A stretch of 64,000 bases of DNA, from assembly GCF_006345805.1 (NCBI RefSeq), contig NC_043002.1, positions 18,538,001 to 18,602,000 on the forward strand, given 5' to 3'. Below the pieces are notes generated by a model. That model had not been told where the DNA came from. It saw only the letters and a list, made by a program, of their open reading frames with translations, and did not search any database. Below, one piece after another: positions 43,787 through 63,731 of this stretch. The position numbers were made by a program, and so were the translations under genes. Position 1 is the stretch's first letter, and each line of letters starts with the position of its first letter. Source of the DNA: Octopus sinensis (Eukaryota).

Positions 43787-43840
43787 TTATTCATTAAAGC
43801 TTTCTCGAAGCTGGTGGCCACCTTCACGAATGTTATGACG
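43787..43840 (-). CDS. Candidate terminal coding exon of iGluR-like copy B ([17 protein letters not shown])
   Basis: Acceptor ttttatttacatgtacAG, phase 0 as required after ..GGGIK|. Best candidate seen, but there is no homology support. Confidence 0.35.
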
Positions 43841-44436
43841 CTGTACATGTAAATAAAAGAAAAATACATTTTATATATGTGTGTGTGTGTGCGTGTGCGC
43901 GCGCGCGTCTTATATATTGTATGTATGTATGTATGTATATATGTGTATATATATATATATATGCATATATATATATATATATATATATACATATACATAT
44001 ATATATATATATATATATATATGTACATATAGATATATATATATATACACGTTTGAGTGAACCAACGAAAGAAGGGCACTCAACAATTTGACTCAAAATC
44101 GTTGATACTCTTGAGTTCTGTCATTCAGATTCAAAATAGCTGACGACTGGCATCACGCTTGAAACTCAAGAGTACCAACAAGTTTGAACCGAACTGTTTT
44201 GCTCCATGTGTGTGTGTGTGTGTGTATAACGCGCATGTACACTCAGTCGCAGGTAGTTAGACACGTGAATTCAGTTTCGACTAGCATTTAAAATAAAGAG
44301 GAACCTAGTCCGAAACATTTATTCGTTTCCAATTAGATTTTATATAACTGTTAACAATATGGTTAGGTCAATTATAACAAAGTAGGCACATTTTTTTCTG
44401 CTGGTGACAATATTTAGAGATAAGCAAGATTACATT

Positions 44437-45181
44437 ATTTACATTATTTATATTGACGGATATTTGTCCTCATCTTGTTTGTTTTCAACACAACATTTCG
44501 GCTGATATAACCTCCAGCCTTCTTCAGGTGTCTTCGGGAAATTTCGAACCTGGGTTCTCATTCTTAAGGTATTTTTCGATGTTACTATTAACATCATTAT
44601 TATTATTATTATTATTATTATTATTATTATTATTATTATTATTGTTCAGGTCACTGCTTGGAATCGAACTCGGAACGTTGGGGTTAGTAGCCCGCGCTTT
44701 TCACCTCTACACCATATGCCCGTGGGCATCTGGTGTAAGGTTCAGATTCCGATTCCAAGCAGTGACCTGAACAATAATAATAATAATAATAATAATAATA
44801 ATAATAATAATAATAATAATAACAACAACAATAATAATAATAATAATAATATAATAATAATAATAATAATAATAATAATAATAATAATAATAATAATAAT
44901 AATAATAAATAATAATAATAATAATAATAATAATAATAATAATAATAATAATAATAATAATAATGATAATAATAATAATAATAATAATAATAATAACATC
45001 GAAAAATACCTTAGGAATGAGAACCCAGGTTCGAAATTTCCCGAAGACACATGAAGAAGGCTGGAGGGTATATCAGCCGAAACGTTGTGTTAACAACAAA
45101 CAAGATGAGGACAAATATCCGTCAAACGTAAATAATGTAAATAATGTACATAAGTCCTCATCTCTTAAATATAGAACTGTA
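44437..45181. mobile_element. Head-to-head inverted pair of family D tRNA/hammerhead elements
   Basis: Axis tgccc-gt-gggca at 44717-44728. Minus hammerhead 44532-44487 GACAC-CTGAAGA-A-GGCTG..CAGCC-GAAAT-GTT-GTGTT; the plus copy has ATGAAGA and an expanded (AAT)n. Confidence 0.85.
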
Positions 45182-45863
45182 TAAGCAAGATTATAGTGCA
45201 TTTATTAGAGGTCAGGTTCAGCCCCGATATCTTTTCATAAAAGGTACAAGAAACCCGAGATAGAATGAAAGTTATTTTAAGAACCACAGATTGGTTTTAA
45301 ATATTTTAACTACACATGCAAAATCGTATAATTCAAAACGATTAATATTCGATATTTTAATTTTGTTCTGTAATTTTTTTCTTCTTATAAATTGTTTTTG
45401 GGAATCTGAACTCTTTCTCGTTGCTCTTCTAACAGGTCGTGTTTAGTGTAAACAGAAGACAGAGAACGGGAAATGAAACTACAGACAACTCCCGAACGGG
45501 AAAGGAAACTACGGACAGACATACAGATAGATAGGGAATAAGCTAGGGAGACGTCAAGGACTATATAACATGAAACAGGAGTTAATGATAACGGTTTCAA
45601 ATTTCGGCACAAAGCCAGTAAATTCGGGGGTGGGAGAAAGTCGATTATATCGATCCCAGTGCATAACTGGTACCTATTTCATACACCCCAAAAGGATGAA
45701 AGGGAAGTCGACCTCAGCGGAATTTGAACCCAGAACGTAAAGACGGAGGAAATTCGGAAAAGCGTTTAGTCAAGTGTGCTAACGATTCTGCCAACTCTCC
45801 GTCTTAAAAAAATAATAATAAACAATAATAATAATAATAATAATAATAATAATAATAATAATA

Positions 45864-48268
45864 GGACCCCCATAACAACTGAAGAGGTCACCCAGGCACT
45901 GCAAAGACTAAGCAACTGGAAGGCACCTGGGCATGACAAGATCCCCAACTTCTGGTTGAAATATCTAACAGGAATGCACAAAAAGCTGGCTGAAAACTTT
46001 AACAACGTACTAGCAGAGCCAGAGACAATGCCTGAATGGCTCACGAAGGGGAAAACCATCTTAATTCCCAAATCAAATGAAACAGAAAAACCAGAAAACT
46101 ACAGACCAATAACCTGCCTCCCTACTATGTTCAAGGCATTTACTGCAGTGATATCACAAAGGCTGAACAAGCACCTGGACGAAAACAAAATGTTCCCAGA
46201 AGAGCAGAAAGGATGCCGCAAAGGCTCATATGGCTGTAAAGATCAATTAATGATTAATAAAGCCATAACTGAAGACAGCCACAGAAAGAAGAAAGGCCTC
46301 AGTATGGCCTGGATTGACTACAAAAAGGCGTTTGATAGCATCCCCCACACATGGATCCTCGAAACACTAGCCATTAACAAAGTAGCACCAACAATCATAA
46401 AATTCATAGAGCACTCTATGAATAAATGGCAAACAGTCCTACACCTCCAAACAAAAGAGGAACTCATGAAAACCGAAGACATCCCCATTAGAAGAGGAAT
46501 ATTCCAGGGAGACACGCTCTCTCCACTCCTTTTCTGCTTGGCACTGTCACCTCTATCTGATATGCTAAATAGAACTGGATGCGGATATAAATGTTACGGC
46601 AAAACGATCAACCACCTTTTATATATGGATGACCTAAAACTATACGCTGCAAATGACAAACAGCTGGAACACTATTAAAGACAGTTCATGGATTTACCAA
46701 AGAAATAGATATGAAATTTGGGTTAGAAAAATGCGCCAAAGTAACCTGAAAAGAGGAAAACTAGTTAAGAGTAACAACATCACACTAGATAAAACCAATG
46801 AAATAAAAGAATTAGACCAAAGCCAAACTTACAAATACTTAGGAATCCATGAACTAGATAAGACACAACACACACAAATGAAAAAGAAAATAAAAAAAGA
46901 ATATTGTAGACGAGTTAGATCAATACTAAACACAGAGCTCAATGCTAAAAACAAGATAATAGGTATCAACACTTTAGCTGTCCCAGTTATAAGTTACAGC
47001 TACAACATCCTTAACTGGACACGAAATGAACTGACCAAAATAGATAGGAAAACAAGAAAATAATGACAGGCTCTAGGATGCATCACCCAAAATCTGACAT
47101 AGAAAGACTATATTACAACGTATAGAAGGTGGTAGAGGCCTTATACAGCTGGAAAACTACTATAAAATAACCACCATAGGACTGCAAAAATATCTACTTC
47201 AGAAGGAAGGAAAACTGATCCAGATAGCGGCAAAACACGAGCAAAACAAAAAACTGTTCTCAGTATTTAAGGAAGCTGACAAATACAAACAAGAAATCAT
47301 ACCACCTAATAAACATGGAAGAAGAAGAAGATGAAGAAACAACAAAAGCTATAAAACAAATGAAATCCAAACTAAAAATAGAACAGCAACGAACCATGAT
47401 AAAACGATGGCAAGAAAAGCCCCTTCATGGTAAATACTGGACTAAACTAAACGCAAAAGATATAGACAAAGAAAAATCCCAGCAATGGTTGAGAAGCTCA
47501 GGACTCAAAGCAGAAACAGAGGGATTTTTAATTGCAGCACAAGACCAAAGCCTCCCCACCAGAAATTACCAAAAACATGTAATGAAAAGAATATTACAAG
47601 TAACTGCAGAATATGTGGAGATGGACAAGAAACAATAAATCATATTATCTCTAGCTGCCCAGTCTTGGCTAAGAAGGAATATATTCACAGAATGACAGAG
47701 TTGGAACCTACATACATTGGAAGCTATGCCAACATTATGGAATAACAACAGAAAAAAGATGGTATAGGCACACACCAGAAAAGGTCACAGAAAGCGAGAA
47801 AGCAACCATACTCTGGGATATGCCGATACACACAGATAGAGAAATTAAGGCCAACAGACCAGATATAGTTGTCAGAGATCATGAAGAAAGAAATGCTTTC
47901 TAATTGATGTATCAATACCGGCTGATGACAACGTGTCTCTAAAAGAAATGGAGAAACTCTCAAAATACAAAGACCTGGAAATAGAGGTAACTAGAATGTG
48001 GAATCTGAAAACAGAAACAATTCCTATCATAGTAGGTGCATTAGGCATGATAAAAAAATATTCAGACAAATACATAACAAAAACACCAGGACTTACAAAA
48101 CAATATAACATACAGAAAATTGCACTACTAGGCACTGCAACATCCTACGCAGAACACTTTCCATACAATAACTATCAGAGCATCACAACAAATCACAGCA
48201 CATACCCAAGGCACACAGAGCTGTGCTCGGTAGTGAAGTGAAAGCACGCTATAAAAATAAAACTACTG
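45864..48268 (+). mobile_element. 5'-truncated R4/Dong-clade non-LTR retrotransposon (RT, CCHC, RLE) inserted in (AAT)n
   Basis: WKAPGHDKI, YRPITCLPT, WIDYKKAFDSI, GIFQGDTLSPLLF, YMDDLKLY, CRICGDGQETINHIISSC, RPDIVV..IDVSIP; (AAT)n on both sides; several frameshifts. Confidence 0.92.
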
Positions 48269-63100: not shown

Positions 63101-63539
63101 TATATATATATATATATATATATATATATATATATACGGGGGGATGCTGAAAAGTTCCTGGCTTTAAGAGTATCTGGAAAGTTTCTTTAACAAATTTTGT
63201 ATATGTCTTGTTGGGACAATCGGAGTGATGTTGAGATTTTAGACTTAGCGAATTTTGTGAACTTAGGAGTTCTCATACGATGTAGCAAAATGAAGTGAAC
63301 AAGTGACGTAGCTAGTATGATGAAGGGATTTTAAAACACCGAATTGTAGGGGAACTATATTCTGGAAAAAGACTCCATCTTACAAACTGAAGTTAAGACA
63401 TAAAGGCTGACAAAAAAATGTAATATCCTCCTGGAATGCTGGGGGGGGGGGAATGAAGGTTAATAGAGTATTATGGAGTGAGAAAAATTGTTTTATCTAT
63501 ATATTTGAAATGTAATATATAAACTTAGAATCAACCTAC

Positions 63540-63620
63540 CTTAGCTTCTGCCAACGTGACTATACATTGAAACGATATCAGCAAGAAAAATCCCAAAGAT
63601 GCAAGATTTATGGAGAACAT
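63540..63620 (-). CDS. iGluR/IR-like gene copy B, exon 1 coding part (signal peptide)
   Basis: ATG at 63620, MFSINLASLGFFLLISFQCIVTLAEAK, donor AAG|GTAGGT, phase 0. Confidence 0.8.
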
Positions 63621-63696
63621 AAATTTCTTTAAAGACATTGACATTTTAACTGGTGATATAGTGGGGCAAATGATGCCTAAAAAGTGTATGAAATGT

Positions 63697-63731
63697 ACTG
63701 ACAGGGCAGTTTCAGTAAATTCGTTTTTATA
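63697..63731 (-). promoter_or_regulatory. Core promoter of copy B: TATAAAAA plus TCAGT initiator
   Basis: TATA starts at 63731 and the Inr A is at 63699 (32-nt spacing); same arrangement as copy A. Confidence 0.65.

Follow-up and report, generated by a model that had tools for sequence, protein, structure and literature searches.

The window analysed here, a stretch of 64,000 nucleotides from Octopus sinensis (contig NC_043002.1, positions 18,538,001 to 18,602,000 of the forward strand, assembly GCF_006345805.1), harbors two tandem genes of the ionotropic glutamate receptor (iGluR) type, copy A at the window start and copy B, hereafter gene B. The spliced product of gene B is 100% identical to XP_029637805.1 (P0001), a protein of 494 aa annotated as 'glutamate receptor 2' of O. 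sinensis. Gene B encodes a half-size channel subunit of the glutamate receptor type that is devoid of the large outer domain and is ordinary except for its pore. The protein, composed of a signal peptide, an S1/S2 ligand-binding domain (LBD), a pore, the M4 helix and a tail, probably belongs to an old branch of the AKDF iGluRs close to ambulacrarian Phi-like receptors; in this branch, every lophotrochozoan member found has secondarily lost the amino-terminal domain (ATD).

Sequence reading together with tblastn placed gene B on the minus strand between positions 43787 and 63644, with six exons, and all introns were found to be GT-AG with compatible phases. The model present in RefSeq has exactly the same exons and is correct at every junction. 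The gene is organized as follows, in the order of transcription.

63725..63731, minus strand: TATAAAA box, candidate core promoter, ∼80 bp upstream of the ATG, read directly.
63540..63644, minus strand: exon 1, coding part, 35 aa (MSMSLKKFMFSINLASLGFFLLISFQCIVTLAEAK), ATG at 63644, donor GTAGGT in phase 0, 100% identical to residues 1-35 of P0001.
59857..63539, minus strand: intron 1, 3,683 bp, rich in repeats; tblastn with 73 ATD queries gave no credible match.
59818..59856, minus strand: exon 2, a 39-nt micro-exon of 13 aa (NPAKKVIKVSTFQ), acceptor TTCTAG, donor GTAAGT.
57766..57957, minus strand: exon 3, S1 lobe (IHPFYMEE...GMIGEVISG), from sequence reading and tblastn.
55433..55778, minus strand: exon 4, end of S1 (HADIAAAPLTLTLDR), M1 and the M2 pore loop to FMWQ/G, donor in phase 1.
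49286..50034, minus strand: exon 5, rest of the pore (GYRIAPRS), M3, S2 (SGST, YAYIMEG and the Cys pair) and M4, donor AAG/GTAAGT.
43841..49285, minus strand: intron 5, 5,445 bp, holding an antisense non-LTR retrotransposon (RVT_1 match).
43787..43840, minus strand: exon 6, 17 codons and TAA, matching the C-terminus of P0001.

The product of exon 1 is a signal peptide: KK stands in the n-region, a hydrophobic core follows, and A-E-A provides the cleavage motif. Its hydropathy reaches a maximum of 2.0-2.5 across residues 12-22. Exon 2 encodes the first β-strand of S1. The donor of exon 5 is located just ahead of an in-frame stop, and an AATAAA overlaps the stop codon in exon 6. The exons described in the first-pass annotation, which had been made from the sequence alone, were found on the minus strand where it had placed them, bounded by AG acceptors and GT donors in fitting phases, and its lengths for intron 1 were confirmed (3,683 bp in gene B, 6,010 bp in copy A). 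Its exon structure stood, but its count of 469 codons in the confident exons and ∼486 in all did not, as that count began at the third in-frame Met and the 494 aa of RefSeq begin at the first. The first Met, eight residues upstream of the third, is the RefSeq start and has the better Kozak context (A at -3).

The AlphaFold model of the gene B protein (pLDDT 75) showed the expected fold of an LBD joined to a transmembrane domain (TMD), i.e., a bilobed LBD interrupted by M1, the pore loop and M3, and followed by M4. The retention of M4, already proposed from the sequence, was borne out by a helix at residues 448-471, and the protein ends in a 25-residue tail. Foldseek aligned the model with the LBD-TMD chains of AMPA receptors over ∼440 columns (E ∼1e-35). 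The best solved relative is the GluA2 LBD-TMD (272 bits). In GluA2 numbering, used throughout for residue positions, the equivalents of P478, T480, R485, S654, T655 and E705 and the Cys pair of S2 (C718/C773) are intact, as the first-pass annotation had read them. The equivalent of Y732 is also conserved, that of Y450 is Phe, and the interdomain pair E402/T686 is replaced by Ile and Val. In the Argonauta hians paralog P0002, R485, T655 and E705 are changed to H, A and D, respectively, so that amino-acid binding has probably been altered or lost in part of the clade.

The pore and the gate of the gene B protein are non-canonical, a point on which the first-pass annotation was silent. The Q/R site (586) is occupied by Trp, and position +4 (590) by Arg where AMPA and kainate receptors have an acidic residue, Asp. 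The M3 gate reads LYIGSMAAH as against SYTANLAAF (AMPA-type M3 reference, SYTANLAAFLTV). All three canonical AMPA/kainate features, i.e., Q or R at 586, an acidic residue at 590 and SYTANLAAF, are thus absent. The 'WQG' motif is typical of the lophotrochozoan short family, and hemichordate receptors and kainate-binding proteins (KBPs) carry Leu or Phe at the site of the Trp.

The gene B protein truly lacks an ATD. Pfam analysis detected Lig_chan-Glu_bd (100.3 bits, cut-off 30), Lig_chan (98.6 bits, cut-off 30.8) and SBP_bac_3, and the absence of ANF_receptor alongside the first two domains is what the first-pass annotation had expected of this check. The alignment to GluA2 starts at the ATD-LBD linker, and the predicted mature N-terminus lies ∼6 residues ahead of the first S1 strand. 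The ATDs of 73 related full-length receptors were searched by tblastn against the whole window, which covers both first introns and 35 kb upstream of copy A exon 1. No credible match to ATD-like coding sequence was obtained in the 64 kb (best real E = 0.029), in agreement with the earlier claim that intron 1 hides no ATD. One strong match was discarded, as its query came from a multi-unit fusion protein and the 'ATD' slice was actually S2. Among contigs of sequencing runs, 21 short ones encode, without introns, a cephalopod relative at 52% identity (P0004). In the six that were examined, the 3' end is poly(A) or A-rich and the ATG is preceded by in-frame stops; they are therefore taken as complete mRNAs of an ATD-less protein.

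It could be argued that the short protein is an artefact of annotation, the ATD exons lying outside the window or copy B being a decaying duplicate. Ahead of the coding part of copy B exon 1 the window extends for just 356 bp, no stop interrupts the frame in the 38 codons before the ATG, and gene models in O. bimaculoides are truncated. However, no ATD-like sequence is present in the 35 kb upstream of copy A exon 1, and exon 1 is a typical signal peptide, a sequence out of place in an ATD-LBD linker. The same start is shared by dozens of orthologs in many phyla, stops precede the ATG in the mRNAs of relatives, none of the six exons is damaged and their splice sites match the consensus, and the O. 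vulgaris ortholog is 97.8% identical along its full length. An artefact is, hence, very improbable.

For phylogenetic placement, the LBD-TMD cores of 168 proteins were aligned, including rat GluA2, the placozoan epsilon receptor and crinoid NMDA-type sequences; the outgroups and the crinoid sequences were taken from the supplements of PMC12226733. Neighbor-joining (NJ) trees with 100 bootstraps were rooted on NMDA receptors, in a set without delta receptors and named Phi references. Support was 93% for the split between the ingroup and the outgroups (NMDA and epsilon), 100% for the cephalopod short clade, 99% for the KBPs and 82% for the AMPA clade, outside of which the gene B protein was placed. 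Its first labelled neighbors were ambulacrarian Phi-like proteins in 97 of 100 replicates, the clade itself having 22-31% explicit support; these neighbors were short hemichordate proteins and/or ATD-bearing proteins of Glandiceps and crinoids. An AMPA or kainate receptor was the first neighbor in none of the 100 replicates, and KBPs in 3. Profile scores of the octopus protein followed the order Phi-like (395 bits), AMPA (337), KBP (293) and kainate (286), a lead of 58 bits for Phi-like, and the same ranking was observed for the other lophotrochozoan short proteins tested. The ambulacrarian sequences, of hemichordates and echinoderms, show the Phi hallmarks, lacking Q586 and having a weakened SYTANLAAF. 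The same hallmarks (PMC6307864) are present in the gene B protein. The long ambulacrarian relatives carry genuine ANF_receptor domains; therefore, the short state of the octopus branch is best read as a secondary loss of the ATD.

The short architecture is widespread. Among the 171 proteins of the homologue set (the 150 best matches of a representative search plus earlier matches), 71 had fewer than 90 residues before S1. Short proteins were found in the cephalopods Octopus, Argonauta and Sepia, in a chiton, in the gastropods Haliotis, Aplysia, Babylonia, Batillaria and Lymnaea, and in the bivalves Crassostrea, Pecten and unionids. Outside molluscs they were found in Lingula, nemerteans, the annelid Owenia and the hemichordates Ptychodera and Glandiceps. 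The vertebrate short proteins are KBPs, labelled 'probable glutamate receptor', 'GLRK' or 'glutamate receptor U1-like'. The invertebrate short relatives are 450-520 aa in length, and all lophotrochozoan members found are short. Octopus has ∼3 short-receptor genes. A second short lineage is represented by P0376 of O. sinensis (476 aa), located on another chromosome, and its Sepia ortholog P0048 (463 aa), which is well expressed (>80 transcript contigs); the pore in this lineage reads WQGYE and M3 reads TYTASLTNYLRI. The O. bimaculoides RefSeq models P0174 and P0175 are truncated, one of them without the S1 exon. In Lineus longissimus, XP_064648822.1 (P0026, 989 aa) comprises two short receptor units head to tail and is probably the product of two tandem genes merged by annotation.

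These data do not uphold the wider claims made from the sequence alone, the possible chemosensory role among them. A cephalopod receptor family had been proposed, but the short form is common to all major mollusc classes, Lingula, nemerteans, Owenia and hemichordates, and Octopus has only the few genes mentioned. The rule that non-NMDA eukaryotic subunits always possess an ATD is broken by the vertebrate KBPs and XenU1 (∼480 aa, no ATD). Novelty also fell away, as the gene is in RefSeq, Phi/Zeta genes of molluscs appear in PMC8437780, and gastropod IR-A proteins of 472-533 aa appear in PMC12837371. The short architecture is neither new nor cephalopod-specific, nor is it a large octopus expansion.

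Gene structure, domain content, distribution of the family and residue states are shown by the data above, and whatever concerns the class of ligand, the formation of tetramers, activity as a channel or the tissue is inferred. In iGluRs, R485, T480, S654/T655 and E705 hold the α-carboxyl and α-amino groups of the agonist, and an amino-acid ligand is therefore predicted for the gene B protein from the conservation of these residues. An α-amino acid would be clamped by the equivalents of R485, T480, S654, T655 and E705, and closure of the LBD clamshell would pull on M3. Four subunits would assemble via LBD, TMD and M4 contacts alone. AMPA and kainate receptors from which the ATD has been deleted assemble and gate, and the solved structures include GluA constructs of 424-431 residues that consist of LBD and TMD only; an ATD-less tetrameric ligand-gated channel is therefore plausible. 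With Trp and Arg lining the filter positions and a changed gate motif, conduction and gating are expected to be unlike those of AMPA/kainate receptors, and canonical cation conduction is doubtful. Possible outcomes would be a low conductance, a changed ion selectivity, dependence on a partner subunit, or KBP-like binding without channel activity. Under the rules of PMC6307864, G653, T655 and Y732 would point, weakly, to glutamate rather than glycine.

Several points weigh against the proposed identity of gene B as a channel subunit of a Phi-like branch. The clade that unites lophotrochozoan short and ambulacrarian proteins has low explicit support owing to a few rogue taxa of unstable position in the trees, and the 'Phi' label of the ambulacrarian clade follows from published hallmarks (PMC6307864) and not from shared accessions. 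The transcript structure in octopus is supported by RefSeq and by the transcripts of relatives. A pore with Trp and Arg may not conduct at all, the changes between copies A and B in exon 3 may reflect weak constraint on S1, and no published functional data on members of the branch were found in the searchable literature.

Two rival readings concern function and descent. One regards the gene B protein as a chemosensory 'tuning' receptor of the protostome ionotropic receptor (IR) family, in the mollusc clade IR-A, acting in suckers or the olfactory organ and needing an ATD-bearing co-receptor such as IR25. Like most IRs (PMC2924276), it has no ATD, and in gastropods, IR-A proteins of similar size (472-533 aa) show enrichment in antenna and lip (PMC12837371). 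LIGRF and IIAYT, two motifs encoded by the BarIR-A.3 primers, are present in short gastropod relatives, and this reading would also accommodate the tandem duplication with near-neutral change in S1 and the Argonauta paralog without R485, T655 and E705. However, both octopus copies keep these three residues, of which IRs typically lack one or more, and the N-terminus is ∼6 residues long as compared with ∼200 in typical IRs. The same short proteins exist in hemichordates, which are deuterostomes, whereas IRs are regarded as specific to protostomes. The number of such genes in Octopus is only ∼3, and translated published primers gave no match to the Aplysia IR209-217 of Croset. A tuning IR is an unlikely reading.

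Somewhat less likely again is a KBP-like orphan, a protein that binds its ligand with high affinity, forms no channel alone and serves as a buffer, a modulator or a silent heteromer partner. Size and layout are those of KBPs, several relatives are named 'glutamate receptor U1-like' by NCBI, the Q/R site is hydrophobic (W here, L in KBPs) with a degenerate SYTANLAAF, and KBPs first joined the Phi-like/short group in 62 of 100 NJ replicates. Homomeric KBP currents are not known to have been obtained reliably, which would fit such a role. Against it, the octopus protein scored 293 bits on the KBP profile vs. 395 on Phi-like and 337 on AMPA, and for tetrapod KBPs the top-scoring profile is that of the kainate receptors (410-430 bits). 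KBPs were the first neighbor of the octopus protein in the 3 replicates only, no shared indels are visible, and architectural resemblance says nothing on function. A further proposal, more doubtful than either of these, holds that in channels of the lophotrochozoan short receptors four Q/R-site tryptophans ('WQG', here with Arg at +4) line the filter and create a mode of permeation or gating unseen in the iGluRs studied so far, and that these receptors, the short hemichordate receptors and the KBPs perhaps descend from one ancient ATD-less ancestor. If there were such a single ancestor, the octopus and mollusc genes would offer a tractable model for the KBPs, whose function has lacked an assignment since 1989.

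In classical glutamate receptors, the ATD directs how subunits assemble and are anchored at synapses. A whole invertebrate branch devoid of the ATD but with an intact amino-acid pocket shows what a minimal eukaryotic receptor can be, and such small subunits are convenient for structural and ligand-screening work. The features most worth attention are the conserved Q/R-site Trp and the altered gate. For octopus biology, the genes would add two or three candidate amino-acid sensors. The existence of a short-receptor family is already on record in the literature and in RefSeq, under several names.

Copy A, the other member of the tandem pair, encodes XP_029637908.1 (P0173), and its protein is 89.7% identical to that of gene B. 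Exons 1-3 of gene B were found again in copy A, as had been noted from the sequence. The alignment of intron 1 between the two copies is broken up by unrelated insertions. The features of copy A are listed below.

295..8704, minus strand: copy A (XP_029637908.1, P0173), with later exons past the window start.
8698-8704, minus strand: TATA box of copy A, the same TATAAAA motif as in gene B, with identical flanks.
8513-8617, minus strand: exon 1 of copy A, 100% identical to P0173.
2464-2502, minus strand: exon 2 of copy A, conserved with gene B.
295-486, minus strand: exon 3 of copy A, 100% identical to P0173, with 93% nucleotide identity to exon 3 of gene B.

The 13 nucleotide differences between the two copies of exon 3 comprise 3 synonymous and 10 nonsynonymous changes, a small sample. 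Change in the S1 exon, which encodes part of the ligand-binding lobe, is near-neutral or diversifying between the tandem paralogs. No third iGluR copy or other gene was found between copies A and B, and the interval consists of transposon remnants and microsatellites.

Several repeats were observed in the window. The antisense non-LTR retrotransposon in intron 5 of gene B occupies 45770-48238 on the plus strand with reverse transcriptase (RT) open reading frames (ORFs), the ORF at 45770-46675 (plus strand) matching RVT_1 with E=2.5e-26, and a weaker RT fragment is present at 33723-34004 (minus strand). Frameshifted remnants of mariner/Mos1-type transposases lie at 11147-12191 and 19938-20415 (both plus strand; HTH_48, E=7.7e-07 and 1.3e-10). 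A Pif1-like helicase fragment at 25521-26069 (plus strand; Pif1_2B_dom, E=2.6e-13) is probably a Helitron remnant. A SINE-like repeat of ∼250-400 bp occurs in many copies on both strands, including introns 1-4 of gene B, often beside (CA)n or (TA)n; examples are as follows.

10658-11094, 18978-19396, 22477-23016, 36667-37118, 53166-53414, 54122-54542, 58315-58445 and 61151-61515: SINE-like repeat.

A second repeat family ('AKTPKSSTRLRQGMVVIPAV...') is present at 15465-15713, 20518-20757, 40055-40294 (minus strand) and 40627-40866 (plus strand), and forms an inverted pair at about 40.1-40.9 kb. A near-perfect inverted duplication with mirror-image ORFs is formed by 12394-12739 and 12925-13256. 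The region 32100-33100 contains no gene; its strongly negative GC skew (-0.37) and raised GC content are due to a CA-rich microsatellite block.

Among known systems, bacterial GluR0 lacks M4 and has a K+-channel filter. The gene B protein resembles it in being devoid of an ATD but has M4 and a pore loop of the iGluR type (FMWQGYR). The vertebrate KBPs (chick, frog and goldfish) and Xenopus XenU1 are ∼480 aa in length and without an ATD, a layout known since 1989. They were reportedly described by Gregor et al. and Wada et al. in 1989, Ishimaru et al. in 1996 and Villmann et al. in 1997. The gene B protein, with 494 aa, resembles KBPs (450-500 aa) in the signal peptide followed by S1-M1-M2-M3-S2-M4 without an ATD, as well as in the hydrophobic residue at the Q/R site and the divergent M3 motif. 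However, KBPs form their own clade (99% bootstrap), and the score of the octopus protein on their profile (293 bits) is well below those on Phi-like and AMPA and just above that on kainate. Orthology with KBPs, hinted at weakly by the NJ trees (62/100), is contradicted by the profile scores, and the ATD was probably lost in KBPs independently, by convergence.

The molluscan IR clades A-D were reportedly defined by Andouche et al. in 2021. The IR-A naming is used in PMC11682238 and PMC12837371. The likeness to the octopus protein consists in mollusc proteins of 472-533 aa with only Lig_chan-Glu_bd and Lig_chan and with tandem duplicates; the octopus protein differs in keeping all glutamate contacts, and the link between them consists of two 5-residue primer motifs in short gastropod proteins. 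Such 5-residue matches of the BarIR-A.3 primer peptides are too weak to establish membership in IR-A. Typical IRs have N-termini of ∼200 residues and no ATD (Croset et al., 2010, PMC2924276). Insect tuning IRs are like the gene B protein in being devoid of an ATD, but they have ∼200 N-terminal residues and have usually lost ligand contacts, whereas the octopus N-terminus is shorter and the contacts are kept. With GluA2 the gene B protein shares the LBD-TMD fold at 33-38% identity, the ligand contacts and the S2 disulfide; it differs in the absence of the ATD, in W586 instead of Q/R, in R590 instead of D, and in LYIGSMAAH instead of SYTANLAAF.

The Phi class (GluF) of AKDF iGluRs was described by Ramos-Vicente et al. 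(2018, PMC6307864), with occurrence in hemichordates and echinoderms, the absence of glutamine 586 and a weak SYTANLAAF as hallmarks and with R485 and an acidic residue at 705 usually kept. Phi-class (GluF) genes and their sister 'Zeta' genes were reported in molluscs by Zeng et al. (2021, PMC8437780), whose survey of 21 mollusc species included the octopods O. bimaculoides, O. minor and H. maculosa (Hapalochlaena). An uncharacterised 'AKDF group II' of molluscs, annelids, cephalochordates and Ptychodera (PMC12226733) is probably another closest known group. Loss of the ATD is not mentioned in the accessible Phi/Zeta papers, Zeng et al. making no comment on the ATD, and the secondary ATD loss across lophotrochozoans and the conserved Q/R-site Trp are not discussed in the accessible papers; nor are short subunits mentioned in the oyster iGluR, the Aplysia iGluR or the 2026 AMPA paper. 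Among the published names, that of gene B may be GluF subclass I/IV or Zeta. Similar to the Phi/Zeta receptors, the gene B protein lies in the non-NMDA (AKDF) branch, is without Q586, has a weak SYTANLAAF and keeps R485 and the acidic residue at 705. It differs from the Phi receptors in that some ambulacrarian members retain a true ATD, whereas the lophotrochozoan members found are all short.

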